From positions 12,338,001 to 12,402,000 of the forward strand of contig NC_047068.1 of the NCBI RefSeq assembly GCF_902459465.1: a stretch of DNA of 64,000 bases. The letters run 5' to 3'. Origin of the DNA: Asterias rubens (Eukaryota). A model generated the notes under the pieces. It saw nothing but the letters and a program-made list of their open reading frames with translations. It was not told where the DNA came from and did no database searches. Both the position numbers and the translations under genes were made by a program. Shown one piece after another: positions 642 to 63,437 of this stretch (its first letter is position 1; each line of letters begins with the position of its first letter).

Positions 642-3600
642 CTATAAAACTATCGGCTTCGTCTACACCTCTTTCTCTCCTTGCAGCTGGCTCAATTTCA
701 GTTTCGTTCTCAACGACGGTTGGCAGGGAGGCAGCTTGGCGTAGCTTGAGGTCATCATCTGTAAGGTCAGAGGTCATGGGGTCAATCAGTACCGCCTGGT
801 CTTTTTTGACTTTGCGCCGTACGGGCTTTGGCGAGAAGTCAAAGAATACCTCGTCGTTGAGTTCGTCGGATAGCTGAGCAGAAAACAAAAGATGAATAAA
901 CATGAACACAGGAAAGATGATTACGGGTGGCTGCTAACAAAAAAACAAAGCCAGCAGTTTTGTTAGAATTGTTATATTTCTGGTAATGGAACAGAAGATG
1001 CATCGAATAATTATTTTATTTCATTTCCAAATCAGTGGCTACTCTTTGTGCTCAGAAAAATCCATGAATTTTTGCCGTGTTAATGGTAGGGTATGCTTTT
1101 AGTAATTACTCCACAAGTAAATGACCATAAAACTTACTTGGTAAGGAGCACTGAAGAGCTGTTGAAAGTATAACACATTGTGAGAAATGACTTCCTTTGT
1201 AGTAGTGTAGTTATAGAAAGTATGAATCTGAGAGAGGTATCAGGTATGAACCATATCTCAGGGATCTGACAGCACACAACTGTATGCAAGACAAGTTTTC
1301 TTTCTTTCATTATTTTCTTGCAACTATGATGACAAATTAAGCTCAAATTTTCATAGATTTGTTATTTTATGCATATGATGGGATACACCTAGTGAGGATA
1401 CTGGTTTTAGACAAAGCACCCAAAGTATACCCTGCCTTTAAGGTGCCGTCTATGGACCAGACACAACCGGAATCACTCCTTTTCCCTGATTGTTCTAGGG
1501 TTGAATGAAAAACCAGCCAGGGTCTCCAAAGGATTGAATTTCAGTGACGGCTATGGTGGTGTGTGTGTCACGTTGGAGAGAACCCCAGGGACTGGACACC
1601 TTTGGTAATCGTCAAAGACCAGAATTCTCACTTGGTGTATCTCAACACATGCAAAAACTAACAAATCTGTGAACATTTGGACTCAATTGGTCAACGAAGT
1701 AGCAAGAGAAATAGAGAAAGAAAAAACATCTTTTCAGATACCCAAAACAGACTTCAGGCATGATGTCTTTAATTATTTGAGTGAGAAACTTCAGAGTGAG
1801 CCATTTCTCACAATGTTTTATCCTATCAACAGCTCTCCCTAACTCGTTACCAAGTAGGTTCTTATGCTTTTTAACAATATAAACAAGACCACCCAGCAAG
1901 GTGGATATGTCCCCATTACAAGTCTTTATTATTACTATTATGAATGAATGAGTGTTGATGCTGATGATGGGCCGAAATTTGAGAACTTACTGCTCCGGGT
2001 GAAAAGAATTGCGTAGAATCCAAGTCGTCATCATCTTCGTAATCGACACACATACTGGCGGGCGCAAAGCTTCGACTGTGAAGTAGCGGCGGGCGCTGCT
2101 GTACTAGACAGTCATGACTCACACTCTGCTTGGGAGCGGTTTTGGGTTGCTGAAGAAAATCAGAAAAATCAAAGAAACCAATGTCAAGAGAAAAAATTCC
2201 GGAAAACAAACCGTAGAAACATTCTAAATGCGGATAAAACAAGCATCTGAAACATGTCTTTTTTAAATTGAGATTATTATTAATTTCTGAGACACGGCCA
2301 ATTACGTGCCGCCACTTCCCCTTCAACCAAACTTTACTCAACTTTTCAGACCGAGTTGACTTCGGACCGAGTAACAACCTCAATAAGCCATTTGCGAGTT
2401 AGATTTGAATATTGTCTGGTACAATTAAGACTTAGCAACTTCCAGTTTAGCAAACCCTGGTCCAATTGTGCCATACACATTCATTCAAAAGTGTGTATGG
2501 GTGTTCACCATCTTTACGTAACTAAGTAAAAGCTTGCCCTGTGGCAACTGTCTCTATTGTCTGAGGAATTCGAACCTGTGTGACCTTTGCATTGCTACAG
2601 CAGATGTCTTATTAATAATAATAATAATAACAGTATTTATAAAGCGCCAAATTGCCAAAGGATACAAGGCGCTGAGAAGGAAAGAAGAGGGAAAAGACAG
2701 AACAAAGATAAAGACGACCAGCTACGAAGAGGCAAAAAGGTGGGTTTTGAGAGCACGTTTGAAGGCTGGGACACTGTTAGAGCTTCTGGTTAGGGTAGGT
2801 AGAGAATTCCATAGTCGGGGAGCAGCAATTGAAAATGCCCTATCACCTGCAAGTTTATGGGTTTTGTGAACTGAAAGGTATTTACCAGTAGTAGAGCGAA
2901 GAGAGTAAGAAGATGTCTGGAGTGAAAGGAGAGAGGAGAGATAATCCGGGGCACAGTGATTGAGGGATTTATATGTGTGGACCATTGTATGGAATTGAAT
3001 GCGTTGGGCAACTGGATTAGGTTAGGTGCGAGTACCACAAGGATTTAAGAATTGTTAGTTTTGCATCGGTGATAAAGAACATATATTTTGTTTTTACCCT
3101 TACACCAATGGACTAGGTCCTGCATAGGGGCCAACTCAGTACATTCCAGAGTTCTGTTAAAAAAAACACTAGGCAAATCATTCAGTGGGATTTGGAGCTG
3201 TCCCTTTAATGTCAATTTGTCAAAAGCATTTGTTATTTATAGATTGAACATTAATTGCGTTAAGAGATTTAAAAGTCTCCCAGTGGCCAGGATTGATATT
3301 TGAAAAGGTTAACACTAGAGACGCGGCACGGGCCTTTTTTTGATATTGCTGCGTGTATGTGACATTCCGGAATCAATTATTATCTGGCGTTGACAAGCGA
3401 TTTCCAACATCAGTCTCTATAAATCCGAGAATGGCCGAGATGAATTGAGGTCAAGCACTGCGTCAAAGAGATAACTTCCTTCTTTAAAGGCACTGGACAC
3501 CTTCGGTAATTGTCATAGACTTTACGATTTTCCAATGGAAGTGCCCTTTGCAAAATGAAAATGGTCTTGCCCCCTCAAAGATGAAATTCCCGGCCTAGGA

Positions 3601-5162
3601 ATTGGGCTCCGTTGACCTGGTATTGGCCTCAGGTGCCCCTTCAAAAGTGTCTCATAGATTTTCCAAAGGTAGTGCCCTCTGCAAAATACAGAAAATAACC
3701 TTGCCCTCGCTAAGATGAAACTCCAGCCCAATTTTCCCAAAAGGGTATGGAATAACGTCTTATTGAATTGAATTAAATTGAATCTGCTATTTTCATTTCT
3801 CAAAAAAACTTCCCACACCGCACCCAGCCGATCGTCTTACCCTTACAGACTGTCGTAGGACATCCCATCCCATTTTGGCCACCGACTGCCTCTTGCTGCT
3901 CTGCCTCGTCAGCCGATGTGAGACCTGCTTCTGAAAGACACTGCTACCTGCCGTCACCGTGCTCATCTGGGAATTCAGTGGCTGGCGGGTGCCGTCAGTC
4001 TCGTCCGTCGCTGTTCGTGTTTTGGGTCTCGCTGATGTCAGAGGGAAAATAATTATGAATAATATAACTACCTCTCTGGTAATGAGATCGGAGACCTCAC
4101 AAGGATTACGGATGTTTAAAGCGAACAAACTCTTAAAGGGAAGGTATACGTCTGGTAATCACTCTTAAGATAAATGGCTGTACAAACTTACTTAGTTACA
4201 AGTACAGTAGCTTTCAATAGTGTAGAGCATTTTGAGAATCATTTCACTTTCAAGTAATATGGGTTTTTGTTTATCCCAAAAATAAATCCCAGAGAAAGGT
4301 TTCAGACAATAATGGTTTTTAGCTTATGTATTCCATTTACGGATTGCTCTCCCTGCATGCACATAATCACTCCGGTTTTTCATCAGAGATATCTCCAAAA
4401 CATGACCAATAAATTTAATAAACACGAACTGATATTTAAAAAAGGGGGGGGGGGAATTACATGTATAGCACTTAAACACACAAAATCTTGCTGAGCAGAA
4501 ACAGGTCACCAGCCAAAACACCCTGTTATGTACACTGTTTATGACTGGTTCCCTATATTGCCTAGCAGAACAAGTTCGCTACGCACAGACCTGTATGCTT
4601 CGTTCCCGAAAGGGCAAGGGGCGCCAAGGCATTTTTTCCTTGGTAAAGTGCACCTATAAGAAATGTCTAGTGGAGCATTTCAAGGACACCAAGGCAATGT
4701 CCAAGGGACATGGAGGAAATCGCCTGCGCGAAGTATCAGACCTGTAAGCGCCTTTAATAAACCCTTTAACAATTATAAATATTCTTACCCAATGGATCGA
4801 TGATGTGAGGAATAGAGGAGGGCACAAAAATCTTGCTTAGCAGAAACAGGTCACCAGCCAACAAACCATGTAATGCATTTTGTTTATGGCTGGTTCACTG
4901 TATAATTATTGCTTAGCACCATTGATTACCCTTTGACAAACTAAAAGTATTCTTACCCAATGGATCGATGATGTGAGGAATAGAGGAGGGCGTAACCGCC
5001 CCCATCGACATGAAGTCCCGCTCCACCTCATCCTCCAAGTGAGGTTTGACCCCGCCGTGGCGCCGACTCAGATGCCGCGACCTTCGAGACTGCCATCTTT
5101 TCTGGTCTTCCTTGGCGTTGTCGCCGACCCCAAAGAAGTTGGCCGTCACACTCTTGACACGA
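642..5162 (-). CDS. RHBDF1: Inactive rhomboid protein (iRhom, RHBDF1/2 ortholog): four shared cytoplasmic-domain exons; gene continues beyond the left edge
   Basis: Exons 5162-4957 (RVKSVTANFFGVG..KRWQSRRSRHLSRRHGGVK..HIIDPL), 4031-3847 (ARPK..KRQSVAKMGW), 2149-1991 (HSRSFAPASM..DDLDSTQFF) and 873-~642 (LSDELNDEVFFD). The donor of the last exon is uncertain (642 or 669). Phases chain correctly. The motifs resemble vertebrate iRhom (TADWFGVS, KIIDPLAR, RESVAKM, RSFTPAS, PDEVFE). Symbol chosen from synteny; an invertebrate would likely have one RHBDF1/2 co-ortholog. Confidence 0.88.
1084..1437. mobile_element. TTAA-flanked MITE, family A (Kolobok/T2-like)
   Basis: TTAA at 1080-1083 and 1438-1441; degenerate TIR (ggtagggtatgc / gtataccctgcct); body similar to the other family A copies. 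Confidence 0.65.
2612..3010 (-). mobile_element. L2/CR1-group LINE 3' fragment with (TTA)n tail
   Basis: APDYLSSLL..YSLRS..AGDRAFSIAAPRLWNSLP..FKRALKTHLF, followed by a 3' end gcgcc..ggcgctttataaa and (tta)n. Confidence 0.88.
4780..4823 (-). repeat. Exact 44-bp copy of the 3' end and splice donor of iRhom exon 5162-4957
   Basis: 4780-4823 is identical to 4948-4991 (tattcttacccaatggatcgatgatgtgaggaatagaggagggc). Confidence 0.95.
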
Positions 5163-5740
5163 CTGGGAAAGAAAGGAGAAGTGATGTTTGTGTTTAGATA
5201 TATGGTCTCTTTGATCATCAACTCTCTTTTTAAAGTGTAATATTCTTTTAAGAAAAGAATACAAAAACAAAAATTCTGGAAAAAAAAGATGCAAAGGTGA
5301 AGTTTGTTTATAGATATGTGGCCTCTTTGATCAACAACTCTCTTTTCAAAGTGTAATAATTCTATATCTATTTTTTTGAATTCATGAGCTCTATAGGTTT
5401 TAAGATACTTTATACTTTTTTTAACCAATAAACCAAACTGACCAAAAGTTTCAAACTATGGAAAACCATCTGTATTAATAATTAAAGTCTTTAAAAAAAA
5501 AACACCCCAAAACCCCATAGTTTCTGATTTACGCCGTCTAAACAGGAAATAGAGGAACTATTTACAGAACTAAACCGACGACACAATTGTCCTTGCTCGG
5601 CCCACTTTGCAGTCAGTAAAGGTCAACTCATTTCAGCCCTAACATTCCCCACCTTGACCGTAAACTTAAACGTACTTCATCACACGACTAACCCACAGGA
5701 AGCTCCCCGATTCCTTAAAGAAAGTTCCATGAGACAGATT

Positions 5741-7703: not shown

Positions 7704-8262
7704 TTGAAAGTCATCAGAAGGCGCCTTGCTATGGCAAGAACATCAGCTATCTCCTTGACTGACATCTGGAAGGACAGAGGGATCTCCAGAACTACCAAAA
7801 TTCGACTAATGAATGCTCTCGTCTTCCCAATAGCCACCTATGGGTCTGAAACGTGGGCTGTGGGTAAAGCAGACAGGAACAGGATCAACGCTTTTGAGAT
7901 GTGGTGCTGGAGACGAATGCTGAGAATATCATGGCAAGAGCACAAGACCAATGTTTTTGTTAGAAACCTGATAGGAGAAGATAGACCCACCTTGTCCTCA
8001 AAAATTAACAAAAACAAGCTTCAGTACTTTGGTCACATATCCAGAAGAGAGGGGGACAACCTTGAGAAGATCTTTATGCAAGGATGTGTTGCAGGTAGTC
8101 GCCGACGTGGCCGCAAAAACTTCATTGGACAGACGGAATCAAAGAACTCACGGGCTTATCAATAAACGTTGCTTATCGATCTGCACTGGATAGACAGAAG
8201 TGGAACTACATCATAAACAGGGTCACAAAGGGTCAGCCATGACTCATAGGACGACGACGAGT
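7704..8262 (+). mobile_element. 5'-truncated RTE-clade non-LTR retrotransposon (C-terminus of ORF plus short GAC-repeat tail)
   Basis: RRRLAMARTS..IWKDRGISRTTKIRLMNALVFPIATYGSETW..INAFEMWCWRRMLRISW..KLQYFGHISRR..GSRRRGR is a typical RTE C-terminus. There is a frameshift near 8120, and it ends in gacgacgacga. Confidence 0.9.
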
Positions 8263-11189: not shown

Positions 11190-11696
11190 GTAAAAATTAG
11201 CTACAAAACAACAACACCAGCAGCAGAAACAACAACAGCAGCAGCAATACCAGTAGCAGTAGCAGCAATAACAACAACAAATTAAACAACAACNNNNNNN
11301 NNNNNNNNNNNNNNNNNNNNNNNNNNNNNNNNNNNNNNNNNNNNNNNNNNNNNNNNNNNNNNNNNNNNNNNNNNNNNNNNNNNNNNNNNNNNNNNNNNNN
11401 NNNNNNNNNNNNNNNNNNNNNNNNNNNNNNNNNNNNNNNNNNNNNNNNNNNNNNNNNNNNNNNNNNNNNNNNNNNNNNNNNNNNNNNNNNNNNNNNNNNN
11501 NNNNNNNNNNNNNNNNNNNNNNNNNNNNNNNNNNNNNNNNNNNNNNNNNNNNNNNNNNNNNNNNNNNNNNNNNNNNNNNNNNNNNNNNNNNNNNNNNNNN
11601 NNNNNNNNNNNNNNNNNNNNNNNNNNNNNNNNNNNNNNNNNNNNNNNNNNNNNNNNNNNNNNNNNNNNNNNNNNNNNNNNNNNNNNNNNNNNNNNN
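11190..11696. other. (CAA/CAG)n microsatellite running into a 403-N assembly gap (11294-11696)
   Basis: Directly visible. The ORFs spanning it are artefacts of the Ns. Confidence 0.97.
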
Positions 11697-12387
11697 GTAA
11701 CAAAAGGAGGACAATTATACATGTATGTTTCATTATTTCAAAACAATGGAGAGGTCAAAACTATTTGTTTTACTAATTTCTAAAAGTATTTTTAGAATTT
11801 CAGTACATGTAATTCACATCAGGTTTTGCCACCATGATCTGCTTTATACCCTGTAATTAATTTGAAAATCTGTGACAATTTATTTTGTTAACCTTACCAA
11901 TATTGTGCACACCCTTTACAATGCTTTTTGGCTAACTTTAATCAAACGTGACTTTATCTTGCAAAAAAAGGGTGGAGCAGTATTATGAATTCTATACAGA
12001 ATATTACAGAGTCTTGTTTAGTTTCCATGGGGCTGTAGCCTGTAGGCGTTGTTTGTTCTGTACTGCCCAGAAGTGTATCTGTACAAGCCTGACTACATTG
12101 CGATTTTAGAAGAAGATAAAAAACTGAGTAAAGATTTTTACGATAACTACTGACAATCCCTGCAGTAGCAAATCCAGTGCGTTGAGTTGACTACTACATC
12201 CAAATGAATCAATGTGCGTTAAATCACTCAGTCGTGAGATCATGGCCACGACGGAGGAAATAATTGGCTCGTAAGAGGAGGGGATGTAGACAAGAATGTT
12301 GGCCGGGAGGGGAATAGGATACGTACATTGATTGGGAGAGGAAGACTGAAGGCGGTGAAGGAGTCAAACCGATGAGATGATCATTAA

Positions 12388-12761
12388 AGGCACTGGACAC
12401 TAGTTTGGTAATTACTCAAAATAATTGTTAGCAAAAAAAACATACTTAGCAATGGAGAGCTGCTGATAGTATAAAAGATTGTGGGAAACAGCTCCCTTTG
12501 AAGTACAATGTAACATAGTTTTTGAGAACGAGGTAATCTCTCACTTAATAATAATATACTTCAGGCCAGAAGCCTTTTTTTTCGCGTATAAATGCACACA
12601 AATTTGTGCAACAAGGGTGTTTTGTCTTTCCTTTTTCTCTTGCAACTTCGATTAACCAATTGAGTTCAAGTTTTCACAGGTTCGCTATTGTATGCATATG
12701 TTGAGATACACCAAGTGAGAATATACTGGTCTTTGACAATTTCCAAAGGTGTCTAGTGCCT
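12388..12761. mobile_element. TTAA-flanked MITE, family A (Kolobok/T2-like)
   Basis: TTAA|aggcactggacac ... gtgtctagtgcct|TTAA. AGG termini with a TTAA target duplication are characteristic of Kolobok-derived T2-type MITEs. Confidence 0.85.
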
Positions 12762-15504: not shown

Positions 15505-15829
15505 AGGCAGTGGACACTTTCTTGGGGACGAGTAATGGGGAGAGGTTGATGGTATAAAACATTGTGAGAAACGGCTCCCTCTGAAGTGCCATAGTTTTCA
15601 AGAAAGAAGTAATTTTCGAGACCTCAGATTTAGAACTTGAGGTCTCGAAATCAACCATCTTAACGCACACAACTTCGTGTGACTAGGGTGTTTTTTCTTT
15701 CATTATTATCTCGCAAGTTCGATGACCGATTGAGCTCATATTTTCACAGGTTTGTTATTTTATGCATATGTTGAGATACATCAACTGCGAGGGCTAGTCT
15801 TTGACAATTACCGACAGTGTCCACTGCTT
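15505..15829. mobile_element. TTAA-flanked MITE, family A, internally deleted
   Basis: TTAA|aggcagtggacac ... gtgtccactgctt|TTAA; shared internal gagacctcagatttagaacttgaggtctc hairpin. Confidence 0.85.
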
Positions 15830-23682: not shown

Positions 23683-23887
23683 CTCTATGTTGGCGGTCTC
23701 CCTATTTCGTCAATATCTTTTTTCGAGGGTGCCAGTCAGAAGCCATACAAATGTTAACTGCTGTGTAGCCAGGGATCAAACCCAAATTACAATACAACCT
23801 GGGAAGCGGCAGCCAGGGGATCACCTTAAGGGGATGCGACTTACAATTTAAAAAACAAAATGGCTACAGCATCTCCTAAATATCTAC

Positions 23888-24108
23888 CTTTTACTCTCAT
23901 CCTCCAGTAAGTTTTCCTCCGAATCTTGAAGTGCATCATTCTCTCCCCTTACTGACCTCTCCTCCTCCTCCTCCTCCTCCTCCTCCCCCACCTCCTCACT
24001 AATCTTCCTCACGCCGTTATTCCCATTGCCGAAGATTTCTAATTCAACGTCCTGGAATGAAACTCGGTTCACTTTCTTTTGCTCCATGACCTTGGCCGAA
24101 ATTGACAT
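23888..24108 (-). CDS. RHBDF1: Candidate proximal alternative first coding exon of iRhom (MSISAKVMEQKKVNRVSFQDVE..EEEEEEEEE..ESK-S)
   Basis: ATG at 24108 with in-frame upstream stops and no usable in-frame acceptor. The 221 nt end in phase 2 at AG|gtagat. Encodes a poly-Glu tract and an RVSF motif. Confidence 0.65.
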
Positions 24109-29930: not shown

Positions 29931-30367
29931 CTAGGAGATGAATGACCAGCAGCTGCAAATATGCAAATTATGCCCAGCTACAGAATGCCTTGGTTAAATA
30001 TTTTCACATGATAAGAAAGAAAAAAATTGTTTTCCAGCCAAGATATCAGTACCATATGGGTTTTGGCCGAGGAGGAGGAAAGATGGTGGATGTCTGGCCA
30101 TGGAGTTGTAGCTTTATGGTCTGGCTTAGGATGGGAAGTTCTAGAGAGACTTCGGGACAGGGGAAAGGGGTGGCCGTGAAGAGTGTGTCTGTAAAGAGTT
30201 TCTCCATGCCTCCGTGAATTAAATAACTAACAAGGGCTGATACTTCTGGTTGTCCTACAAAAACTCCTTGACTGGCTTTGGTAATGTTCAATGTTGATAG
30301 CGTTTGCAGGGATTCCGGTTTTGAAGGTAAGGATACAACAGCTGTGTTGCAGTATGATTTGAGTTAA

Positions 30368-34097: not shown

Positions 34098-34101
34098 TTA
34101 A

Positions 34102-38387: not shown

Positions 38388-38515
38388 TTCCTCCATGTGC
38401 CAGCTTGTATAATAGCCGACTGCGCTGGTGACAGTGCCCCGTCCACTTCCATGCCGTCATCTGTCTCCGGGTCCGTCATCTGGGAGTAGCGAGCCCAGTC
38501 CGGTGACCCAGACAT
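38388..38515 (-). CDS. RHBDF1: Candidate distal alternative first coding exon of iRhom (MSGSPDWARYSQMTDPETDDGMEVDGALSPAQSAIIQAGTWR-N)
   Basis: ATG at 38515 with an in-frame upstream TGA. The 128 nt end in phase 2 at a consensus donor AA|gtaagt, which matches the phase of exon 5162. Upstream acceptor ccctag at 38589. The exon is GC-richer than its flanks. Confidence 0.7.
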
Positions 38516-46065: not shown

Positions 46066-46345
46066 ATACTCATCCAAACCCTGAGGAAGTCTTGAATTAA
46101 CGTTGCTTTTGACTTTCGCTGAAAACAAAACAACTGTTTCTTTGCAATTCGATTTGTGATAACAGCCATACAGTTTGTCACAAATTATACAAACAAGATG
46201 TTGTCAATGGAAGCAAAGGAAAGATTTATGAATGAAGCTGGATAAAAACAATTGAAATTTCACGGTTCAGTTTTACTACAATGTGATTCAAATTTGGATA
46301 ACAGTCAAACATTGACGGCTATTCTAATTATGAATTGACTTTTAA

Positions 46346-49589: not shown

Positions 49590-49985
49590 TTACAATCCCT
49601 GCTCAAAATGTGCGCTAACCAGCAGCCAAGCTTGTCCGGACTTGCAACCGCAGCAGCAGCTAGGTCGGCGAACGACATGAACGAGGGGACGGACGAAGTA
49701 ATTTTAGTGCTCAATCAATCTTTCGTGAAAAAAAAAATAAAGTGTCAAAAAGCATGTATGATAACGCCCTCAACGACAGTCAACAAGAATTTTTATTTTT
49801 TTCCGAAGCTGGTACCCAGGAACACGTGTGGTTTTGTTGTTTGGTATGTTTACCAATGAATTTGGCATCTGTTTTGGTGTTGTCCCGGAAGTAATGGGTT
49901 GATGTGTGGTTGAAAGCGTCGTCTGCTTCGGTTTTATTTTAGAAGGCGGAACATAGCGAAAAGGCTGCAGAAAGATCGTGTAAGA
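49590..49985. promoter_or_regulatory. Putative bidirectional promoter / first non-coding exons of iRhom (minus, ~49.6-49.7 kb) and MPG (plus, ~49.94-49.98 kb)
   Basis: CpG-enriched patch between the two divergent genes. Candidate plus-strand donor gatcgt|gtaaga near 49980 and acceptor ctaaag at 50818 upstream of the MPG ATG. Weaker minus-strand donor gggatt|gtaatg near 49595. TSS positions are inferred. Confidence 0.5.
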
Positions 49986-50863
49986 TTGCAAAACAGAACT
50001 GGGTCTTGTTCTCCTGTTCGTGGTACCGTATTGAAAAAGCAGCAGTACTGTAAAATCTGCACTTACTTTGTCAAATTTTGTTAACTTCTTGAGTGAAACA
50101 ATTCTCAGTAATGTATAATTTAATTAATGTAAGTTAAAGTTGTAAACTCATTGTAAGTAACAAATAATGACTGATTTATAATTCTAGATGATGTATTGTC
50201 TTAGTTCCTACTGTTTAAATGTTTGTCAGTGTTGTGTTTTGTTTATTGAAGTGTCTTCTGTCCGTAGGTACGGGAACAAAAGTAAAGTTGCTTCACCCGG
50301 GCCATGTTCTGTTTTTGTGATTATTTGTCCCGCCTTTGTGTACATTTCTCATAACCTAAATAAATACGTTATCTATCGATCTATCATTGGCAAAGTATCC
50401 ATCAGGAAACATCATGTCAACTTTGTTGGTTAGTTGTGCGCGTTGAAAAAGTTTGTTTTTGTTGAGCTGCAGAATTGAAGGCCTGATCGACTCTGGTGGT
50501 GTTAATTGCACTTGCAGGGGATTTGGGTTTTGTTTTGATTGTAGAAAATGACTGTTTTTTCTTATTTTCTTTTCTACCAAATACTTGTATACCTCTGCAT
50601 ACTATTACTATTAGCAACAAACAAGTGTGGGTAGAAGCCGGAATTTCCTTGGGCCACCAAGTCCTTGAATGGTCGCTAAGCTCATTGACCAATGATTTTT
50701 TAAATTATCTCACACACAACATGTTTTAGGAAGACTGCCAAAAAAAGTCCCCCTCCAGTAAATTTGTTTTTGTCAACCCTAAATGTACGCTTACAGTTTT
50801 CTTTCATTTCATCTAAAGGGGACAAATCTGCCGGAACTGGGACTTTTAATTTTGTGCAATTGG

Positions 50864-52684
50864 ATGATGGCCCCTCCTCCTAAAAGTCGCAAAAGAAAAT
50901 CCGCTGACAATATCGGAGACAAAGCAGCAAGCACAAGCAGCAATGTGGTCAAGAGCCCATACTTCTCAACTACAAAAGCTGATTCTAGTACCACGGAAAC
51001 TGGTGAGACACTGGATGAAATCGTACTTGTTACTTGACTCAAAGAACGAACAAACAAACAAGCAACCAAACAAACAAACTGAAACAATAGTGACGAGCCT
51101 AGGGTAAATAGAACACTGGTGCTAAGGTTCTATGGAACACTGGTGGTAATTAGGGCCTAACACCATGCAGGGCCTGAGACAAACAGAGCACTGGTTTATA
51201 GGACCATGGAACACCGGGACCTAAAAGCCTGCAGAACACTGGTATGTAGGGCCTATGGAACACAGATGCTTATAGGGCCTTATAATAATAATAAACTAAA
51301 CTTATCCTGTGGAACACTGGCACCTAGGGTCTATGGAACACTAGGTTCTAAGGCCTAAGGAACACTGGAGTATAAGGCCTACCTTGGCAATTTTTCAACA
51401 GTGTATCCTGAGCAATGAACTGTTTTTTTCAAATACAAAATCAATAGCTAGGCAGAGGATTATATTTTAGACTCCTTTTGATGCATTGTAATAAATCAAA
51501 TAAAAAACCTTAAGATTAAAATTGTAGTGTTTTTCTCACAACTACAATTTATGTAATTGTTTCTTATTCAGGGGGTAGCAAGAGACTATCGGCATCATTC
51601 TTTGACCAGCCGTGTGAAGCCTTGGCTAAGGCACTCTTGGGTCAGAGGTTAATACGCAAGGTTAACGATGATGAGCATATCGCTGGTGACATCGTCGAGA
51701 CAGAAGCGTATCTAGGGAAGGAGGATTCAGCTTGCCACAGTTATGAAGGGCGGAGAACCAACCGTAACAAAGCCATGTACATGAAGCCAGGTGTATGTTA
51801 CGTCTACCTCATCTATGGAATGTACGACTGTTTGAATATTTCGAGCAGGGGTGAGTCATAAGGGATTTCCAGTGATTAAAAATCTCATCTCAGGCGTGAT
51901 AATTGGTCCTTGGCAAAAAAAGTAGGAACATTAATTTTATAAAGTACAAGGGCTGCCCTACATGTACACATGGTATGTGCTTTAACAGACTTTTCAATCT
52001 ATTTAATCACAGTTTTTCTGAATTTTGCAAGGGCAAAAACATCGGAAATCAAACTAACCCTAATTTATTTGAAACAATCAACTATATGGGTTACGTTTGG
52101 TGGCACAACAGTGTACTGTGTTAAGCGAATTCACCATCTGATATCATATGGCATACAGTGGATGATAAGTTGTCAGTCAGTAGAAGGGTTGACTGTGTAC
52201 TGTTTATCATTCAAACCCACAGTAGATAATCTTAAATGGTCAGATAGTAGCAGGGTTTAACTACAAGTGATGTACAATATATACCTAAGTTTTTACACTA
52301 TTTTGTCGCTAAGGTGATGGGCAAGCAGTTCTCATCCGAGCCTTGGAGCCCAAGGAAGGCATCCCAACGATGCAAAGACACCGAAGCAGACGGCGCAAGA
52401 CACCCGCCAAGGAACTCAAGATGAAAGATCTCTGTAACGGTCCGGGGAAACTCACTGAAGCCCTGTGCATCAAAACCTCTGAGATGAACCAGGCAAACCT
52501 GGCGGCAGATTCCTCCATTTGGATGGAGAGGGGGGATCTTGAGGTTAAGGAGGCGGACATCGTGGGGTGTCCTAGGGTCGGGATTGACTACGCGACTAAA
52601 GAATGGGTCAAGAAACCCTTGAGGTTTTACATCAGAGGAAACGGATGTGTTAGTAAGAGAGATAAGGAAGCTGAACAATCTTGA
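50864..52684 (+). CDS. MPG: DNA-3-methyladenine glycosylase (MPG/AAG), ~262 aa, 3 coding exons
   Basis: Exons 50864-51002 (MMAPPPKSRKRK, basic NLS-like N-terminus; donor G|gtgaga), 51572-51850 (FFDQPCEALAKALLGQ..GDIVETEAYLG.EDSACHS..RTNRNKAMYMKPG.CYVYLIYGMY.CLNISS) and 52314-52684 (GDGQAVLIRALEP..LCNGPGKL..RVGI..WVKKPLRFY). The total is 789 nt, in frame. These are hallmark AAG-family motifs. The first or second ATG (50864/50867) may be the start. Confidence 0.95.
51095..51385. repeat. Degenerate ~23-30-bp minisatellite in an MPG intron
   Basis: Recurrent (ta)gggyctatggaacactgg units. Confidence 0.75.
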
Positions 52685-53683
52685 AGACTATCATATATGT
52701 ATTCAAAATGAATCAATGTATATTTGGTTCAGTTAAACAGTTCAAAGTTTAAAAACATTTGTATATCTACCAGCTGCACAAAAACAACTCTGTAATGTTT
52801 TCAAAAATCTGTGTTCCTTGAGTTTACTTATGAGAATTTTAATAGCCGCGCGTATTCAAATATTTTTTACAACCTTTGTTGCCACTTAAATTTTATATTG
52901 TGAAGAAACTAAATCATACACTTCAACAAACAAAAATGTAATAAAAATGACCGAAAAGTAATCATAATTCAAATTCATTCATAGTCAAATAGATTGATAT
53001 TTTTATTTACAGAAAATATACAATATAATATAAGCAATAATTATTAGAAAATATAAGATGAACATAAACCACTTGGGCAAATTGATTCCATCAGTGCACA
53101 CTTCCTGCAAATGCCAATGTAAAACGAATTTTGACGTCACAGGTGTTTTTTTTTTGCAGTGAATGTTTTGGAGGAGTTGAGCACAAGTCAACTGAAGCAA
53201 ACTATATGTTGTGAATTTGCTACGTCAAAATTTGTAAAGCATTCGCAGGAAGTATGACCTGGGCTTTACTGTACTACCTTACAAGAATATGTTCGTGTAC
53301 ATGTATAATACTTGATGGCCTGTGTGTGCAGTTTTAATTAAACCATGAAATCTTTGTCTGTGATTTGGTTGTTCAAATTAACATCACTTAGTTTTTTTAT
53401 TGCCAAACCATTGAGTCGAAGCCCCTTACACACAAGTTTATTTTTGACAGTCGGCCTTGAACTAACTTCCATTGAAGTGACAAAATTTGAGCTTCACCAC
53501 CTGCCCTGCTTGCTGTGACATCTTCTGTTTGAAAACCAGTTTGTGTCAGCTAAAACAAGCTGTAAAAATTAAGCAATGATGAAGCAAAATGAGCAACAAA
53601 CCTTTATTGAAAAATCTCTGGGAAGCATTTGGAGGGGCACCAAGGCTAAGACAAGGGAAACAGAGGCCATGGCCTCCGTGTAA

Positions 53684-53885
53684 TAGACCGATCCAGTAGG
53701 CTCCGCCTACGACGCACGTGTGAGCAAGAACACATGGGGCTCTCCATGCCTTTCTGCACGACTCTGCCGCGCGCGCCAAGATACGCGCACGCATGTCGGA
53801 CCTTAGTGTCGGACCTTAGTGTCGGACCTTTGTTGCATTGTGATTGGCCAATATGTAATGGGGCGGAGCTTAATGGATCGGTCTA
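53684..53885. mobile_element. CpG-rich TIR element (MITE) between the MPG and NPRL3 3' ends
   Basis: Imperfect TIR tagaccgatccagtaggctccgcc / ggcggagcttaatggatcggtcta; internal 3x tgtcggacctt repeat. Superfamily not determined. Confidence 0.65.
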
Positions 53886-54019
53886 TTCCAGGCCTGAAGG
53901 TATCCCAGGTAAAGTTCTCATAGCACTTAGCAGACGAGTTGTGAATAATATTGTCAGTTTGTATTGTAGCATTGAAATGTTCAGAATTTTGCTTTTGAAA
54001 ATTAATATCAATGCATTGG

Positions 54020-54285
54020 TAACTCATGCTTGGTCATGCAGTCTGGCAGGGTGGTCTTGCAGCAGCAGTGCTTGATGGAACCCCACTTGGACACCATCGT
54101 GCAGTTGGAAGACCAAAACCCCGCTGGATCGATGGACTCACCAGATGGTGTGGCCTCAGCGTAGCTGAACTAACTGCGGCTGCCCTACAGCGACACAAAA
54201 TCACCACTGCTCCAGCCACACAACCAGGAGAAGTGGACGGTTGTTGCGTCAACGAGCAGCAGCCTACGATGATTGATGATGGTAA
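54020..54285 (+). mobile_element. Degenerate RTE-clade LINE 3' fragment downstream of the NPRL3 stop (antisense to NPRL3)
   Basis: LGHAVW..AAVLDGT..RAVGRPKPRWIDGLTRWCGLSVAEL resembles the RTE C-terminal GH..G.RRRGRP..RW.D motif; it ends in a gatgattgatgat tail. Confidence 0.65.
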
Positions 54286-54434
54286 CTCATCTCTAGATAA
54301 ACCATAGCATTTTATGAAATCCAGCCCAATCTGTTCTTCTTTCCATGGTATGTCAACTAGAACTTCCATTGTCACTCTTGCATACAGGGTACCTGACATA
54401 GAATTGACCCATAGGTCTTGTCATCTCACTGTTG

Positions 54435-57400
54435 TCATAAGAACTGTTTATACGCAACTGTAGCAGCATCTTGATGTGTACAAATGACCAACACTTGCTT
54501 GAACTTCTCAAGGAGCATGTAGACCTGAGAACGATTGACATTCTCATAGTACATGATTTCCTCAAGATGATGTCGACCGCGGAAATACTGGCAAAGTCTG
54601 CAAGAAAAAATATCAAAGTAATTAAGAAATTCCAAGCATAAAGTTATGGAGTGCACAGATTTGTCAACTAAAGGCCCGGTCCCACTGCAGCGATAACTAA
54701 AACGATAACGATCACGACGCAAAGAAAACACGATCTATTGGTCGAATTGCTCCACGCAGAATATGCACACGCTCATTCAACCAATGGAATGCGTTCTCTT
54801 TGCGTCGTTATCGTTATCGTTATCGCTGCAGTGGGACCGGGCCTTAAGGCTCAATTACATAGAGCTGCTTCAGCAATGTAGGTATGCACACGCTTACTAG
54901 AATAGGGTTACCAGCCAAATTTTTATTGCAATTGCCAACATATGCATAAAGTAATAAATCAAGGAAAATTTGGGCTTACATGGTCATCGAAGTTGCAAAC
55001 AAAACAATGAAGAAAAAAATACCCTTGTTGCATAGAATTGTGTGCTTTCAGATACCAGAGAAAGGCTTCATGCCTGAAGCCTATTAACATGTAGCCCTAG
55101 ATGGGGATGATCATTAAGCCTGGGCGACTAGTGAGATTTACTACTCAACTAGTCGCGCCTCAAATAGTCTGACTTCGACACTATAGTCACAACTATATAC
55201 ATGCGTATATTAAAATTTATGCTGAACAGATTGAAGGATTGTATCACTGATTGTGTTTCGTAAGTTAATTATGCTGTTGTGAATAGTTGTGAGTGACACA
55301 ATTGGTTCACCAAGCAGGAAGTTGCAACCATTAATTTTTTGTAATAGTTGTGGCAGCTTGATTAACTGAGTAGTTGAGAGACGGTAGTGGCGACTCAACT
55401 AAGCAATCAAATTAATTAACGATCATCATGCTCGGTACCTCACCTTGCAAACAGTTTAAGATCCTCTGGGTTCCTAGCAGCAGGCACATTCATGACGCAG
55501 TGTCGCTCCGTCTCATTCAGATTCTCCTTCAGCATGTCCATGACTTTCTGTCTGCTGTGACTGTGTCCCTCGTTGTCAAGAGACAGGGTAGAGTAGGAAT
55601 CTAGACTGGTGCTCAGCTCGTCGGAGTCCACTAGAGTAAATAGTAGATGAAAAGAAATTACTTATTATCGTATATCAAAAAATTTGGTAAAGCAAAGAAG
55701 TTTGCTAAGCAGTATTTTTCTGCTTGACAGCCTTATGATATTGGACTAAACGACATAAAGCTTCTTAAGCAGAAAATTTTGCTGAACTATTTTCGAAAAT
55801 TTGCTGGATACCAGTTACATTATGGAACAAAAGACATCACATTTTGGCAGGTAACCTTATTCTTATAAAAAATTATTATCATTTTGTTTGTTAGTAATTA
55901 CCGTTTATGAGCAATATAGAGGATGCCCTATTCCACTGACATCATGGTTTATTGTTACATTGGCCAGGGCCCAATTTCATTGATCTGCTTAAAGCACAAA
56001 AATAGCTAAGCAAAACAAAATTATGCTTAACAGAATATGGTTTCCAGCCACATTACTACATGTAATTCAATATATAAAATCTGTGACTGCTATCCTGCCT
56101 TATTTTGACTAAAAAAACAATTTCAAACAGCGCCTCTATAAATTTGGGGCCAGACCACTGCACAAGGTAGGGAAACTTACTGGACATATTTAACACCCCT
56201 GTGGCACTGAGCTTATCCAGTGAGGCTGCAGACATTGGTGACGAACCTGACGCCTTGTTTGGCTGATCGAGAAGCTTGACTGGTTGGTCAGTCGGAATCA
56301 TGAGGAAGACATACGTGTGGAGCTGAAATCAAGACGGTAAGTGCGTGGAAGGAGGACATAACAAATTACAAGAGAGGCATAAGCAATTGAATTAGTATAT
56401 AAGAATGGGTTTTGAGATAACTGAGTGTGAAAGAAAAGATGACGCTGTCCTCCTTCTAAGGTTCAAAGGAAGAAAGTCCTAATATCAACGCATGTGAGGT
56501 GCACTTTGATTAGCTGCATTTTCATTGTGGGGTGCAGACCGTATTGAACATACCATGTATCAGGCGCACAATGTACACAGTAATGGAGACCTTCAGCTTG
56601 TTTTATGCTAATCTGAACTTACTTTTTCTTTTTTCCCCGAGTACCATTATTTAAAGGAAACGTTGCCTTGGATCGGTCGAGTTGGTCTTTGAAAGGCGTT
56701 TGTAACCGTTTGTTATCAAATGCATATGGGTAGAAAGATGTTGTAAAAGTAGAATACAATGATCTACACAAATTTTTGACTCCCATAAATGGCCGACCGT
56801 GTTAGTTCGCAAAGTAAAAGGAAAACCACGCAATTTCAAGTCAAATTCGTGTGGATCATTATATCCTACTTTTAAATTATCTATCTAACCATTTGCATTT
56901 TATAACAACCTGATTTCAAACCCTTTTCAACGACCAACTCGTCCGATCCAAGGCAACGTGTTCCTTTAAAAGGATTTTACAAAGGGTTTTAGGTACAGAA
57001 GTTTTTTTGTTGGTAACAGAGCTTTGGGATCACATCGATCAGATATCAGACCTAGCATCTTGAACACAGAAACAATAATTTCAAGATGGCTGACCTGTAT
57101 TAAGAGCCTCTTCTGTAGCAGCCACATTAGAATCTTCACCTTCTCTGCCTCGTTCTATCAAAGTGAAAAGAATCAATCATCAAACGAAAAACATCTTCAA
57201 GGAGCACTATGCTTTTCGATAGGGCGCTTTGAGCTATAAAAACCTTTTGTTATAATAGTAATATACAACATTTATATAGCATATCATACATAGTGTTTCT
57301 AAGCGCTTAACAATAAAACAATTGGAATAAACAGAATAAAGAGCAATTCCCTGAAGCAAAATTTTGAGAGGTAATTACAAAAAGTCCTTTTTACAAGACC

Positions 57401-60400
57401 ACACCAATTCCAAGGAAATAAAGTTGCTCTCCAACGACCCATCCCCAACCCTAACTGGAACCCAGAGCCACTCAGTCACCTGTTTTTCTCCGATGTTGAC
57501 AACGTCGCTGAAAAGATTCGGCTGGGAAAATGCAGAGAGTGCCTCCGTTAAATTCCCACCGCCAGTCAACTCGTGGAACTCCTCGTGGTAGGGTGAAGTT
57601 CTGTTAAAGGGAAGGTAAAAATTTGGTAATCAATGACATTAAGGGCAACAAAAACTTACTTTGTCAGAAGTACAGCAGATTTTAGTTGTATAAAGCATTT
57701 TGAGAATCATTTCACTTCGAAGTAAGGTGGTTGTGGAAAAAAGATATCAGTCCAATTTTTTTTGGTTCAATGGTACAAAATTTCCAAATTTTCTTTCAGT
57801 GGAGATGAATTTAATAGATGATTGACTTTAGATATGAAATAAGAACAAATCTAGTATTGGCGATTGGGTAAATCAAATTTGTAATCTGTTTATTTTGTTG
57901 TTGATACCCTCGGGCAAAATGAGTTTCAAACAGTTAAGACCTCTTAACTGTTTGAAACTCATTTTGCCGTTTGTTTGTCTTTTTATGTTTGTTTATGCAT
58001 ATTGAACAAAAACAATAGTCAATAGAAACAACAAATTAACTCTTACACTGATGTGGGAGCTCTTGGTGATAGAATGTACACATTGCTGCCGCAGATGGGG
58101 TAAAATATGGTGGCTTTACCCCAGTAAACCAGATGACCTACGATCTGAAACACCTTGGGGAAATAAGAAAAACAAATTTGTAAAATGTAATTCTAAAGTC
58201 CAGCTAAACAAGGAATGATATTTGCTTCATTGTAAATAGAAGGAACATTTGATACATCCTGCCTCAATATAAATCAGAGCCAAACATTTATTGTTATCGC
58301 TGGTTAGATTTGTTTAAACAAAAAAAAGGCTGAAAATAGCTTCCTTTTTTGTTCAAAATCTGCAAATGAATTCTTCCATCAAATGTAACAACACATTCCA
58401 AAATGGTAAAACCAAAATTAATATCATGCCTGTTTTATTCTGCACCTTTTCTCACCTAATTTATTCCAATACTGGCAAATATAAACAAATGTAACATAAC
58501 ATGTGACAAATTTAACATACTTAAACTGTTAACAAAAAGTAACTATTAATAAATAGTAAACTTGCGGGTACAACCGTGTATGTATCTCTTTTGAGGGAGT
58601 GTTGGCTCAGAAAAGAGCCAGTGTGGTCTCGATGTTTCAAACAGCATTTATACTCTTATAGATACTTCTTATTCTTCACACCATGCTAAGCTCCAAACAC
58701 CATTTAGACTGTTAACATTATTACTAATATGCTGGGGGAACAAAAATGAAGCATAGTGTTTTTTGACCTATCGGACAAAATAAAAAAAGAAATAAAATAA
58801 AAATGTTTTTAAATTCTTTGTACCTGAGAGAGAGCAAGATCTGTGTCTTGGCTGAGTTGCTGAAGGCTCTTGAGGGGGGAAGACATCGTTATGGCACGGC
58901 GAATCGATGGGGAGCAGTCCCTAGGCAAGGAGGCGAGGAGTTCTTTGTCATCTTCAAGGAGGAGGATGGCGTGGTAGGGTCGGATCGCAAGGAGGCTCTG
59001 CTCAATGATCTTTGGCTGCTCAAGAATGAACGACAATTCAATTCATAGATGTTTGGCATTTTGGATAATTCCACTCCAATTTAAAGGGATTGCATAACAG
59101 CATCCTTATTTCTTGTTTAGGTGGGTTCAAGTCCCCGTCTTGACACTTGGGTCCTTAACCAAGGCATATAATCATTATGCTTCGTCCTTCAGATGGGATG
59201 TTAAGCTGGAGGTCCCTCGTAATGTGTAATGCAAATAAAAGAACACAGTGCACTTATCATAAAGAGAGGGGGTTCACTTAGAATTTGCTGGTAGGGGCTG
59301 CTAAATGCACTGCTGCACCTTAGTGCACCGTAGGGCTACATAAATGAGTCTCATAATTCACGAACTTTAAAACCTGTCTTAAAAAGAGTCTATCTTTGTT
59401 CAAGCGCCGTAAGCACCTGTATAAAGCCTAGTTTATACTTCCTGCGGTTGCAAATTTTGAGGTCACATATTCGCTTGACTCAGTGCTTGACTTCTGCGAA
59501 TCATTGCAGCGAAAACAGAGCTGTGACGTCAAAACTCGCTTCTCATTCGCAGAAAGTATGAACCAGGCTTTAGACTCCAATAGTGTTTTTATTATCATTC
59601 TTACCTCAATGGTAAACATTTGATCCACATTGTGTACTTTGTGCGGGAGACAAAAACTGACTTCAATCCAGTGGTTGATAAAGACATGACATACTCCTTT
59701 TTCGCATAACCTTCCGATGAAAAAATAAACTTGTAACATTTATAGAACGGTCAAGGTTCGTCCTGTACATGGGGGAAGTTTTTCAAATCTTTTCATTTCT
59801 GTGCAGTTGGGGTTGTTGTATTGGTTTCTTGCCTCACCTTCTACCTCTAGGACCCCGGTTCAAATCCCGCCAAGCCACTATGTGGATTGGGTTTTCAGTC
59901 ACTAACAGACTGCGATGAAAGTGGTTTCTTTCCCCATTTTCTACCTCTAGGCGACCCAGCCAAATCCCGCTGAGGATTGGGTTTTTTGAGAACCCTACTT
60001 GACTACGTAGGGTTCTCCTGGAATAACTCTCTGGGGTTTTCCTACTCCAACATGCTCAAACTAAAACTTCCTTCCTTTTCTTCTCTCTGCTTATTCTTTC
60101 CAGCAGCACCCTCAGTGTGAGACAAATTATTTTTACAAACTTGCTGTACAGTGTTTTTGCACTGTTGCAACATTATTCCACTTACCCCATGAAAACTTCT
60201 CTGAGATCTGTACAAAGCTTGCTCTTCATCAGCATAATGTAGAATGGAGATTCTTCAGCATCTTGGGACAACATGAAAAAAACAACATGTTGTCATGTTC
60301 CCTGACTATAAAAGCACACATGTGTACACTTATGCTAGTTATCCCAAGGAATTTTGATCAAGTTCCATGCTTTTCCTCATTGAACCCAAGTCTCAACACT

Positions 60401-63400
60401 CCTGGGGTGACAGGTCTTTTTTCTTCAGCTGTGTGCGACGAATCTGGAACTCTCTACCACAGATCTTGTCTTTGTACCACAAAATTCAAATCGCTTCTCA
60501 CAATGAATCTTATGTCCCAGGTTTTCAAGGACTAATTTAGTTGTGTCTGTTTTCTTTCGTTTTGTTTTGGTTTTACTGCTCCTTGAACACCCAGCAGGGT
60601 GGATATGTGCACATTACAAGTCTTTAATATTATTATAAAGAAGAAATAAGAAGAGATCAAGAGGAAGTAACTAAACAACAATCCAACCTTCGGGCATAGC
60701 AGCCACCTCATCATGAGCGGACATCATTATAACTGCTTGATGGCTGAGATATCCGCATCGTCTCTCTTCGTGCTTCAGGGCCACGACCAGACGTTTGCTG
60801 AGATCATGATAGCAGCCAACGACGGAGGGATCGGCGCTTGCCTGCAATCAAATTATCAGTATTAATGATCACTTTTTACTTTTACAAATCTTTTGTCAGA
60901 ATCATTTCAAACCATTCAACTGCACAGTCAAGTAGTATGTAATTTGTCAGTACTTTTTATCCCTTGCTTTTAATACTTCTTGATGTAATGCAGGGTTGAC
61001 CATTATTCTCATTTGAGGTATCCCAACATATGCATTGAAAACCGCTTGTTGCGCAAATTTGTGTGCTTTCACTTGCATAAAAAAGGCTTCAGGCCTGAAG
61101 TCTTTTAATATTTAAGTGAGAAATTACATCTTTCTCAAAAACTATGTTACTCCAGAGGGAGCCGTTTCTCACAATGTGTTATACTATCCATCTGTTTAAC
61201 TCTCCGTTGCTCATTAACAAGTAAGATTTTAAGCTAACAATTATTTTGAGTAATTACCAAATGTCCAGTGCCTTTAAGTAGGAACAATAGCATGTTGTAA
61301 TTTACTATTTGTGGTTGGTTTCCAGTTTGTTTTTCCCGAACCTTGTTAAACACTATATTGTTCGCTTAAGCCACTCTTTGAAAATTGGTCCAAGGTACTT
61401 ACATGAAGTACAAAGACCACATTAAACATGGCCATAGTCCGACCCTCTCGTCTCGATGAGCCATCCTGTCCCTTCTGCCAAACAAAAACAAGTAAAACTT
61501 ATTTTAGAAAATTAATTCAAAACTTAAATAGTGTTTGTTACTTTTTGGTTGACTGTGAAAAACTGGACTACAACCTGTCCCTTTCAGCAGCTACTTCATC
61601 TGCTTTTCATTTGAAGACGTTAGAGCAAACTGATTGAAACGTAGAGCTGTTACACCGCCTGTTCTTTTCAAAATATTCCCACCTACATACATTTTTGTTA
61701 CAAGTTTTTTGAACCTCTCACTTTAGATTTGTCAATGAGTTGACCCACCACTTGAAACCATTTGATTATATTGGTTGAATATAGTTGAGCAAGTGCACAG
61801 AACTAACTGTGTACATGTGTGTACTTTGTAGATCTGCGTTTACTATATGATATCATATTGCAGGCTGGCATACAGTTTATCTATCATTCAAAACCACATT
61901 GGATGGTATTGAATGGTCAAACAGTAGGAGGGTTGACTGTGTTTTCTTGTGTGGATGCATTTACCACATGATGTCATATTACAGAGTGGCATAGTTTACC
62001 TATCATTCAAAACCACAGTGGATGATATTGAATGGTCAGACAGTAGGAGGGTTAAAGAAATCTACAAAAGGGTGGACTCTTACAATTTTTCTGCCTCCAG
62101 CGACAATGGGAGTTGGATGACCAACAAATTTGACATCATCGATGGTCAGTTCAAAGCGATGGTCACACAGGCCGGTCCCAGTGGTCAATATGTGAGCCAA
62201 GATTTCATCAGAGTAACTGTCAAATGGAAACAACAAGTAATTTAAACAAGTTTTTCATAACAAATTATTTGTCCCACCATGACAATGACTAGTTACAAAT
62301 GTGACTGTGTGTCGAGGAAGTGCTTTATTAGCACTTGTGAAACTGAGTACAGGGAAGGTATAGGCTTGGTAATCAATCTAAAAATTAATGGTAATTAAAC
62401 CTTAGTAGTGCTCAGCTTTCGAAGCATTTTTCGAATCATTTCAGTAATGTGGTTATATGGAAAATATCAGTTTTTATCCCCCGAAATTTAAATTTCAGAA
62501 ACATTACTGTCAGAAGCAACAAATGTGTCAACCCATTTTAAAAATGAAAATTTGCACAGTCTGAACATACCCGACCAACTTCCCATGTTTGATACTCGAC
62601 GTTGGTCTACAGTCATTAGGATTGTCCTCTGGCACCTGCTGGGCAAACACATTATGCTTTCTGTCTGCAAAACAAATATAAGCAAAATAAAAACGTCTTA
62701 ATTTTGATAATTGTTGGAATAACTCTCCTTCGCAGATGCACATTTTGTGGGCTCATACAATAATTGCTACCAGAAAGTTTCAGAAATCCAGCGATCAATC
62801 CTTCTCAATAAGAGTTTTCAAGCGAACAATGTGTAGGTTGGATGTCTGTGTTGGATGTCTGTCGTTATTCAGCAGAGTACATATAGAACAGTACTACATC
62901 TGGAAAAGTTTCCGTATGGCGCCACCACTTTTTCATTCGATATGAAATAAAATAGTATCTAATTTACCTCAATGAGATATCCCTTTTAGTTTACTTAGTA
63001 AAAATGAGTGAAAAAGTGGTGGCGCCATACGGAAAGTTACCCCAGGCAAATCTGGTTACTGAATCATATGAAAGGTATGGGTAACAAAGTTTTAAAAAAG
63101 GAACCAACAAATACCCCCCCCCCCCCCCCACTACCTGTAATTAGTAATAAAAAATTAAAAAACATAAAAACACAAAATTCACAACATAGCGAGGGCGCCA
63201 CCACCTGTTCAAAACACGCCATGCAAGTTCCCAGACACTCATCATGTGCTAAAATCATGTGACACCGACAGGAGGACCGCCGCTGTTTTATTTACTTGAC
63301 TAAAGACCGCCATACTTACTCTTCTGCACAACTTCTTTCTCTGATTCTTCTTGGTAAGGATACCTGAATAATAATCGATTTCCTTTAGACCCTGCAGAGA

Positions 63401-63437
63401 CTAATATAACGCTTAGGGGAACCGATCTTCCAGACAT
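54435..63437 (-). CDS. NPRL3: GATOR1 complex subunit NPRL3 (nitrogen permease regulator-like 3), complete, 14 coding exons, 574 aa
   Basis: Exons in transcript order, all with GT-AG and consistent phase: 63437-63320 ([28 protein letters not shown]), 62664-62571, 62216-62084 ([29 protein letters not shown]), 61474-61403 ([11 protein letters not shown]), 60841-60688 ([27 protein letters not shown]), 60261-60186, 59710-59605 ([16 protein letters not shown]), 59015-58824 ([17 protein letters not shown]), 58153-58047 ([16 protein letters not shown]), 57600-57480, 57154-57095 ([10 protein letters not shown]), 56322-56181 (LHTYVFL), 55630-55444 ([15 protein letters not shown]), 54597-54435 ([19 protein letters not shown]). 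The total is 1725 nt. Motifs match my recollection of human NPRL3. Confidence 0.96.
54672..54844. mobile_element. PIF/Harbinger-type MITE with TAA target duplication, in the last NPRL3 intron
   Basis: 26-bp perfect TIR aggcccggtcccactgcagcgataac / gttatcgctgcagtgggaccgggcct, flanked by TAA on both sides. A TWA TSD is typical of PIF/Harbinger. Confidence 0.85.
56655..56965. mobile_element. TTAA-flanked MITE, distinct family, in an NPRL3 intron
   Basis: ~33-bp TIR aggaaacgttgccttggatcggtcgagttggtc / gaccaactcgtccgatccaaggcaacgtgttcct, with TTAA on both sides. Confidence 0.85.
59110..59290 (+). mobile_element. tRNA-derived SINE remnant with a Deu-like central domain, in an NPRL3 intron
   Basis: B box gggttcaagtccc, then gacacttgggtccttaaccaaggca, then gtccttcagatgggatgttaagctggaggtccc..aaaagaacacagtgcactt..aagagaggggg. 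This resembles the DeuSINE/AmnSINE domain as I recall it. Confidence 0.55.
60330..60510 (+). mobile_element. Degenerate L2-group LINE fragment in an NPRL3 intron
   Basis: ..[22 protein letters not shown] remnants across frameshifts. Confidence 0.6.
61010..61273. mobile_element. MITE family A, reverse orientation, partial, in an NPRL3 intron
   Basis: Reverse-complement family A body ending gtaattaccaaatgtccagtgcct|TTAA. Confidence 0.75.

Follow-up and report, generated by a model that had tools for sequence, protein, structure and literature searches.

The 64,000-nucleotide stretch analysed here (contig NC_047068.1, positions 12,338,001 to 12,402,000; hereafter the window) contained three protein-coding genes, iRhom, MPG and NPRL3, in the arrangement known from human 16p13.3. 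The 5′ half of iRhom lay at the left on the minus strand, and it was followed by MPG on the plus strand and NPRL3 on the minus strand, both of them complete. iRhom and MPG were arranged head to head, and MPG and NPRL3 tail to tail. The base composition of the window was ~38–40% G+C, its introns were long, and interspersed repeats were numerous. The sequencing runs in which this DNA occurs were marine.

The origin of the DNA was assessed through MPG, as the initial annotation had recommended. By tblastn, the nearest MPG was that of the sea star Asterias amurensis, with 86–95% protein identity across the exons, and the MPG of Patiria and Acanthaster shared 67–73% protein identity with them. After A. 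amurensis, the best named matches were also from echinoderms, a crinoid and a sea urchin. The comparator was a chromosome assembly of A. amurensis, which is independent of the window. Its 42.6-kb locus on chromosome CP134962.1 (L004, positions 1–42616) was collinear with window positions 20207–61755 (~41 kb) at ~90% nucleotide identity, introns and intergenic DNA included. Judged by these sequence comparisons, the window is DNA of an asteriid sea star close to A. amurensis. A vertebrate origin was ruled out by the echinoderm matches of MPG and by the collinearity with L004, and the suspicion that the DNA came from an invertebrate proved correct.

MPG comprised one non-coding and three coding exons. 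The non-coding 5′ exon (49903..49979) was joined to the first coding exon (50819..51001, with the ATG at ~50864) by one RNA contig of run X13. The joints from 51001 to 51571 and from 51849 to 52313, which delimit the second coding exon (51571..51849) and the start of the third (52313..52684), were supported by RNA contigs of three runs. All three joints (49979>50819, 51001>51571 and 51849>52313) were of the GT..AG type. The first coding exon had 95% identity to A. amurensis MPG by tblastn, and the second matched human MPG at 2e-26. Pfam Pur_DNA_glyco matches covered 51562–51858 at 1e-32 and 52313–52681 at 4e-26, and the stop codon was read in the third exon. The coding span from ~50864 to the stop at 52684 amounted to 262 codons. 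In addition, a possible distal first coding exon of MPG was placed at approximately 30292..30330 on the plus strand by orthology to L004:10001–10033, reading MLIAFAGIPVLK and then a GT donor. MPG isoform X1 of A. amurensis opens with an 11-codon exon, and the window orthologue at 30.3 kb retains both the ATG and the GT donor.

NPRL3 was complete and comprised ~13 coding exons from 63437 down to 54438 on the minus strand. The first coding exon, with the ATG (63303–63437), aligned to residues 4–41 of human NPRL3, and the exon at 58812–59036 aligned to residues 243–310 at 1e-19. The last coding exon (54438..54599) matched Pfam HTH_NPRL3 at 8e-15; the last codon lay at 54438, and a piece of an RNA contig ended at 54599. 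This exon was conserved in a crinoid, a sea urchin and an abalone (see below). The minus-strand open frames that hold the other coding exons were found at 55443–55661, 56059–56328, 56969–57154, 57378–57629, ~58046–58160, ~59600–59700, 60185–60292, 60674–60847, 61349–61498 and 62039–62254. The exons matched the Pfam NPR3 model collinearly at model positions 2–38, 112–138, 142–182 and 271–332, and their amino-acid identity to A. amurensis was 81–100%. Conservation with the crinoid at the DNA level was seen within NPRL3 at 58064–58155 and 59600–59680. The intron adjoining the exon at 56969–57154 carried a fold-back element (56650–56969), whose arms (56650–56705 and 56914–56969) showed 84% complementarity. 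Its inner pair was 84 nt, and the unit had matches elsewhere in the A. amurensis locus in both orientations.

The iRhom gene was more difficult to recognize. One minus-strand exon (4916..5260) carried a conserved N-terminal motif with its core at ~4949–5158, and gave weak PDB and Pfam matches. It matched residues 89–164 of iRhom2 (PDB 8snl_B) with an E value of 0.0028 and positions 5–67 of the Pfam model iRhom1-2_N with an E value of 0.0055, a match under the curated cut-off. A protein search with this exon, bounded by a limit on protein length, returned one near-identical fragment of 101 amino acids (aa) but no iRhom of full length, and an ESM Atlas search returned only noise. Two further N-terminal exons were proposed in the minus-strand open frames 1919..2383 and 3796..4128, in which an RSF-PAS...FF motif and an SVAKM motif, respectively, presumably resemble human RHBDF1. 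The last exon visible before the left edge (642–909, in the minus-strand open frame 529..909) was proposed by position only. Farther to the right, a proximal first coding exon was located at 23884..24108 on the minus strand, with 93% amino-acid identity to L004:3493–3711, inside the range of A. amurensis iRhom. The PDB and Pfam searches gave no significant match for the proposed exons at 529–909, 1919–2383, 3796–4128 and 23884–24108. A distal first coding exon was located at 38400..38515 on the minus strand (the lower bound is approximate). It begins MSGSPDWARYSQ with the ATG at 38515, was kept in A. amurensis, and was orthologous to the start of the coding sequence (CDS) at L004:18681.

Inside the window, the identity of iRhom was thus weak by sequence, and the decisive support came indirectly from the orthologous A. 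amurensis gene. The minus-strand gene in L004 encodes 941 aa with an iRhom1-2_N (PF12595) and a Rhomboid (PF01694) domain. Its CDS start corresponds to window position 38515, and it extends leftwards beyond L004. The rhomboid domain of the window gene must lie farther to the left, outside the window. The gene has two alternative first coding exons at a distance of 14 kb, both of which have an ATG of their own and are conserved in A. amurensis. Two open frames in iRhom introns (7704–8165 and 2722–2985) resembled reverse-transcriptase or LINE-tail fragments, with no significant Pfam match.

An assembly gap of 403 N (11294..11696), whose left flank is a (CAA/CAG)n run, was located inside an iRhom intron, between the exons 23884–24108 and 4916–5260. 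No exon borders the gap, no exon or reading frame spans it, and the open reading frames (ORFs) listed across it consist of X. A misassembly at this gap, a wrong iRhom call or a vertebrate contaminant would turn the trio into an artefact. In favour of this explanation, the gap parts the sole iRhom-like exon with a database match from the remainder of the locus, and the direct evidence for iRhom is weak. MPG, NPRL3 and both iRhom first coding exons all lie on one side of the gap. Linkage across it has only indirect support, from the A. amurensis model, in which the first exons, iRhom1-2_N and the rhomboid domain belong to one gene. Against an artefact, the independent A. amurensis assembly showed the same trio order and was collinear over 41 kb, the splicing of MPG was confirmed by RNA contigs of several runs, and the best named matches were echinoderm, not vertebrate. 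The explanation is already largely refuted, and we give it hardly any credence.

The same three genes were called in the same order in the A. amurensis chromosome assembly. Besides iRhom, MPG and NPRL3, the gene calls in L004 included one implausible 136-aa 'Histone' range, and none other. This call was on the minus strand, and its range covered the entire iRhom-MPG-NPRL3 locus (1–42616). Motifs of H3, H4, H2A and H2B were looked for in the window and none was found, which ruled out a genuine histone gene in the block. Because the orthologous window is without a core-histone motif, the call was taken as an annotation artefact that probably links distant H3 copies. The remaining open frames of the window resembled transposon fragments according to the ORF list and Pfam. 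The observation of the initial annotation that no other gene was found between the three was upheld by the L004 calls, which correspond to window 20.2–61.8 kb. The order iRhom(−), MPG(+), NPRL3(−) was likewise borne out by the Pfam and human matches, the RNA contigs and the L004 calls.

In vertebrates, the order is POLR3K-C16orf33-C16orf8(RHBDF1)-MPG-C16orf35(NPRL3)-globins-LUC7L (PMC2529266); the first part is named POLR3K-SNRNP25-RHBDF1 elsewhere. Comparison with this published order confirmed the match to human 16p13.3 in order and orientation that had been claimed for the window. Both loci hold the three orthologues in the same order and relative orientation, with nothing called between them. 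They differ in that the 5′ region of sea star iRhom is far longer, and 11 kb separate the MPG 5′ exon from the iRhom coding exon closest to it. The sea star sequence also gives no grounds to infer erythroid enhancers, and its iRhom runs off the left edge, beyond which SNRNP25 and POLR3K would be expected. By rough reasoning from ~20,000 genes, made with no computation, it is negligibly likely that three specific orthologues would share the same order and orientation by chance.

A shared promoter had been offered as one constraint that could keep the genes together. The nearest 5′ exons of MPG and iRhom, the proximal MPG exon at 49903–49979 and the distal iRhom coding start at 38515, were 11 kb apart, and a compact shared promoter does not fit this distance and was rejected. 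The tight junction in the locus was instead that between the 3′ ends of MPG and NPRL3. At the 5′ side, the predicted distal MPG exon (30.3 kb) has an iRhom first exon on either side, at 24.1 and at 38.5 kb. If this exon is real, the 5′ exons of MPG and iRhom may interleave.

The stop codons of MPG and NPRL3 were only 1.75 kb apart, and the stretch between them (52685..54437), which holds the convergent 3′ untranslated regions (UTRs), was transcribed according to the RNA contigs. These contigs covered 52313–53702 and 53859–54599, and broke only at a repeat (53682–53887) that left ~156 bp uncovered. Plus-strand poly(A) signals, which would serve MPG, were found at 52940 and 53337. No minus-strand poly(A) signal was found between 53609 and 54438, the NPRL3 stop; therefore the NPRL3 3′ UTR reaches ~53585 or lower. 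The 1.75-kb stretch is thus transcribed almost from end to end, and the two genes abut or overlap at their 3′ ends. In human, the 3′ ends of MPG and NPRL3 overlap. The repeat at 53682–53887 (~200 bp) holds three tandem copies of GTCGGACCTT(A/T)GT. Contig depth there lay in the 10^4 range in both RNA and DNA runs, and every contig broke there. Because it occurs once in the window, we regard it as a genomic repeat of high copy number that is transcribed at this site.

Other genomes were surveyed with MPG as anchor and flanks of 10 kb. MPG(+) and NPRL3(−) were found tail to tail in the crinoid Anneissia japonica, the urchin Diadema setosum and the abalone Haliotis cracherodii, which is a mollusc and a protostome, with 2.0, 7.5 and 2.8 kb between the coding ends, respectively. 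Each of the three pairs was confirmed by tblastn with the NPRL3 exons of the window. The same adjacency and orientation in deuterostomes and protostomes thus holds for the MPG/NPRL3 pair, not for the trio. Because the pair is present in echinoderms, in the abalone and, according to the literature, in vertebrates, it is most simply taken to be at least bilaterian in age. Of the triplet that the initial annotation proposed to survey, a part was thus seen more widely: the MPG/NPRL3 pair stood in crinoid, urchin and abalone, and iRhom was not found there within 10 kb upstream of MPG. Upstream of MPG in Diadema (L002, 1–8400), a 1584-aa retrotransposon polyprotein (RVT_1, RNase H and integrase) also carried an HTH_NPRL3 match. 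This model may be chimeric, or it may include a captured fragment of the NPRL3 C-terminus.

Several observations weigh against the view that the trio is an old block held together by its structure. The pair was not found in the coral Stylophora, where MPG lies amid FAM86, an unknown gene and a RhoGEF, or in the wasp Fopius, where MPG adjoins VPS18. In Lymnaea and the brittle star Amphiura, there was no gene within 10 kb of MPG. In crinoid, urchin and abalone, the 10 kb upstream of MPG showed no iRhom, and the upstream neighbour of abalone MPG was a giant plus-strand gene. Documentation of the full trio is therefore confined to vertebrates and two closely allied sea stars of Asterias type, with RHBDF1-MPG alone in amphioxus. 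Within the window itself, iRhom is weakly identified, with four proposed exons that matched nothing, and the interleaved MPG exon comes from gene prediction rather than from RNA. Finally, because the Logan contigs carry no strand information, the overlap of the 3′ UTRs is one that we infer. An unannotated gene of 559 aa upstream of the coral MPG was tried as a candidate NPRL3 and gave no tblastn match.

These absences bear directly on a neutral explanation, in which no constraint acts and the adjacency survives through slow rearrangement of echinoderm, mollusc and vertebrate genomes. The loss of the pair in Fopius and Stylophora, its absence within 10 kb of MPG in Lymnaea and Amphiura, and the non-adjacent iRhom of the abalone all agree with it. 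However, the orientation and a short spacing (1.75–2.8 kb) were kept in lineages that have been apart since the bilaterian ancestor. Moreover, a transcribed and nearly gap-free junction leaves almost no neutral breakpoint, and is itself a passive constraint. We consider a purely neutral leftover possible, at a rather low probability.

Another explanation is a regulatory block, in which enhancers lie inside neighbouring genes and an ancestral element hosted by NPRL3 was later used by the globins. There is a precedent in vertebrates, where the enhancers of alpha-globin are located in introns of NPRL3 and boost Nprl3 as well (PMC11933693). Enhancers located in a neighbour account for many ancient microsyntenic pairs (Irimia et al., 2012; PMC3514665). 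However, when the window was compared by blastn with the loci of crinoid, urchin and abalone, only exons matched, and no conserved non-coding element appeared in the covered part of NPRL3; these loci cover only part of the gene, and enhancers are poorly tested by sequence conservation. The three genes are also of housekeeping type rather than developmental regulators. A regulatory block is improbable on this evidence.

From the identities, order and orientation of the genes and from the presence of the MPG/NPRL3 pair in other animals, we infer that the sea star trio is probably an inherited and very old gene-order block, which would have lasted most likely through physical interlocking and not because of globin. 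Under this interpretation, the MPG/NPRL3 pair would date to at least the bilaterian ancestor, and the vertebrate globins would have joined the 5′ side of NPRL3 later. The transcripts of MPG and NPRL3 converge so tightly that nearly the entire 1.75 kb is 3′ UTR, and a break within it would be expected to harm one of the two genes. Interleaved 5′ exons may bind iRhom and MPG together too, and the low rate at which echinoderm, mollusc and vertebrate genomes rearrange would account for the remainder. A bolder version holds that MPG/NPRL3 is an interlocked unit of bilaterian age whose overlapping 3′ UTRs are functionally coupled through antisense or termination interference, and that it formed, with iRhom, a permanently open housekeeping block, already in place when the proto-haemoglobin gene settled beside it in stem vertebrates. 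Such coupling would pair a DNA-repair gene (MPG) with a brake on mTORC1 (NPRL3). We regard this version as doubtful.

The locus had been described as being without a visible globin. The window stops 563 bp beyond the NPRL3 start codon, and the position that globins take in vertebrates, 5′ of NPRL3, falls outside it. No globin was among the L004 gene calls, and no search aimed at globins was made within the window. The description therefore says little, and the absence of a globin from the locus is not established. In vertebrates, the linkage of NPRL3 and globin is more than 500 million years old and extends to jawless vertebrates (PMC11933693). In amphioxus, RHBDF1 (17_000132) adjoins MPG (17_000133) on scaffold 17 with no linkage to a globin, and in Ciona MPG and RHBDF1 are each linked to a globin; it was proposed that globins joined their flanking genes later (Wetten et al., 2010; PMC2975663). 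Parts of that model were discussed and doubted by Ebner et al. (2010; PMC3087553).

The amphioxus case is a close parallel to the sea star locus. Both are invertebrate deuterostomes in which RHBDF1 and MPG are neighbours without a globin, and both lead to the same inference of a prior linkage (PMC2975663). They differ in that the amphioxus paper does not mention NPRL3 in invertebrates, and the sea star adds both NPRL3 and an outgroup to the chordates. The abalone extends the MPG/NPRL3 pair to a protostome, beyond the amphioxus case. No paper was found that names NPRL3 beside MPG in invertebrates or the trio in echinoderms, and the tables of microsynteny catalogues may list them. The trio genes are unnamed in the accessible text of Irimia et al. 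(2012; PMC3514665), and in the text and seven supplementary files of Robert et al. (2022; PMC8851819). The novelty suggested by the initial annotation was overstated, as the adjacency of RHBDF1 and MPG without globin in amphioxus had been published in 2010 (PMC2975663).

Ancient microsyntenic pairs of metazoans offer a second comparison (PMC3514665; PMC8851819). As in the sea star locus, unrelated genes have remained neighbours in different phyla for over 500 million years. Such pairs are usually explained by a developmental gene whose enhancers sit in a bystander, an explanation that is not obviously applicable to three genes of housekeeping type.

Work on alpha-globin regulation asks why the linkage of NPRL3 and globin has persisted for more than 500 million years (PMC11933693). 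The NPRL3-MPG-iRhom backbone predates the linkage to globin and is maintained without erythropoiesis. With the backbone in an echinoderm and the pair in a mollusc, explanations for the stability of the block therefore need a reason that is unrelated to globin. The interpretation of the initial annotation was thus partly supported: the trio predates vertebrate haemoglobin, as it is present in a sea star and MPG/NPRL3 even in a mollusc, and the shared promoter was not sustained. The sea star provides a concrete outgroup locus for what preceded the globins 5′ of NPRL3. The gain is incremental: for RHBDF1-MPG in amphioxus, the idea has been in print since 2010, and ancient microsynteny is common. 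The case carries this published idea one gene (NPRL3) and two phyla further, and it is not a surprise.

An interspersed repeat family of ~370 bp was also detected in the window. At least 10 copies were present, mostly in iRhom introns, and they were 68–85% identical to L004:13–387. The copies were located at 1079–1414, 12384–12741, 15522–15810, 20229–20595, 30355–30696, 31856–32036, 34098–34493, 37840–38186, 46342–46691 and 61120–61286.

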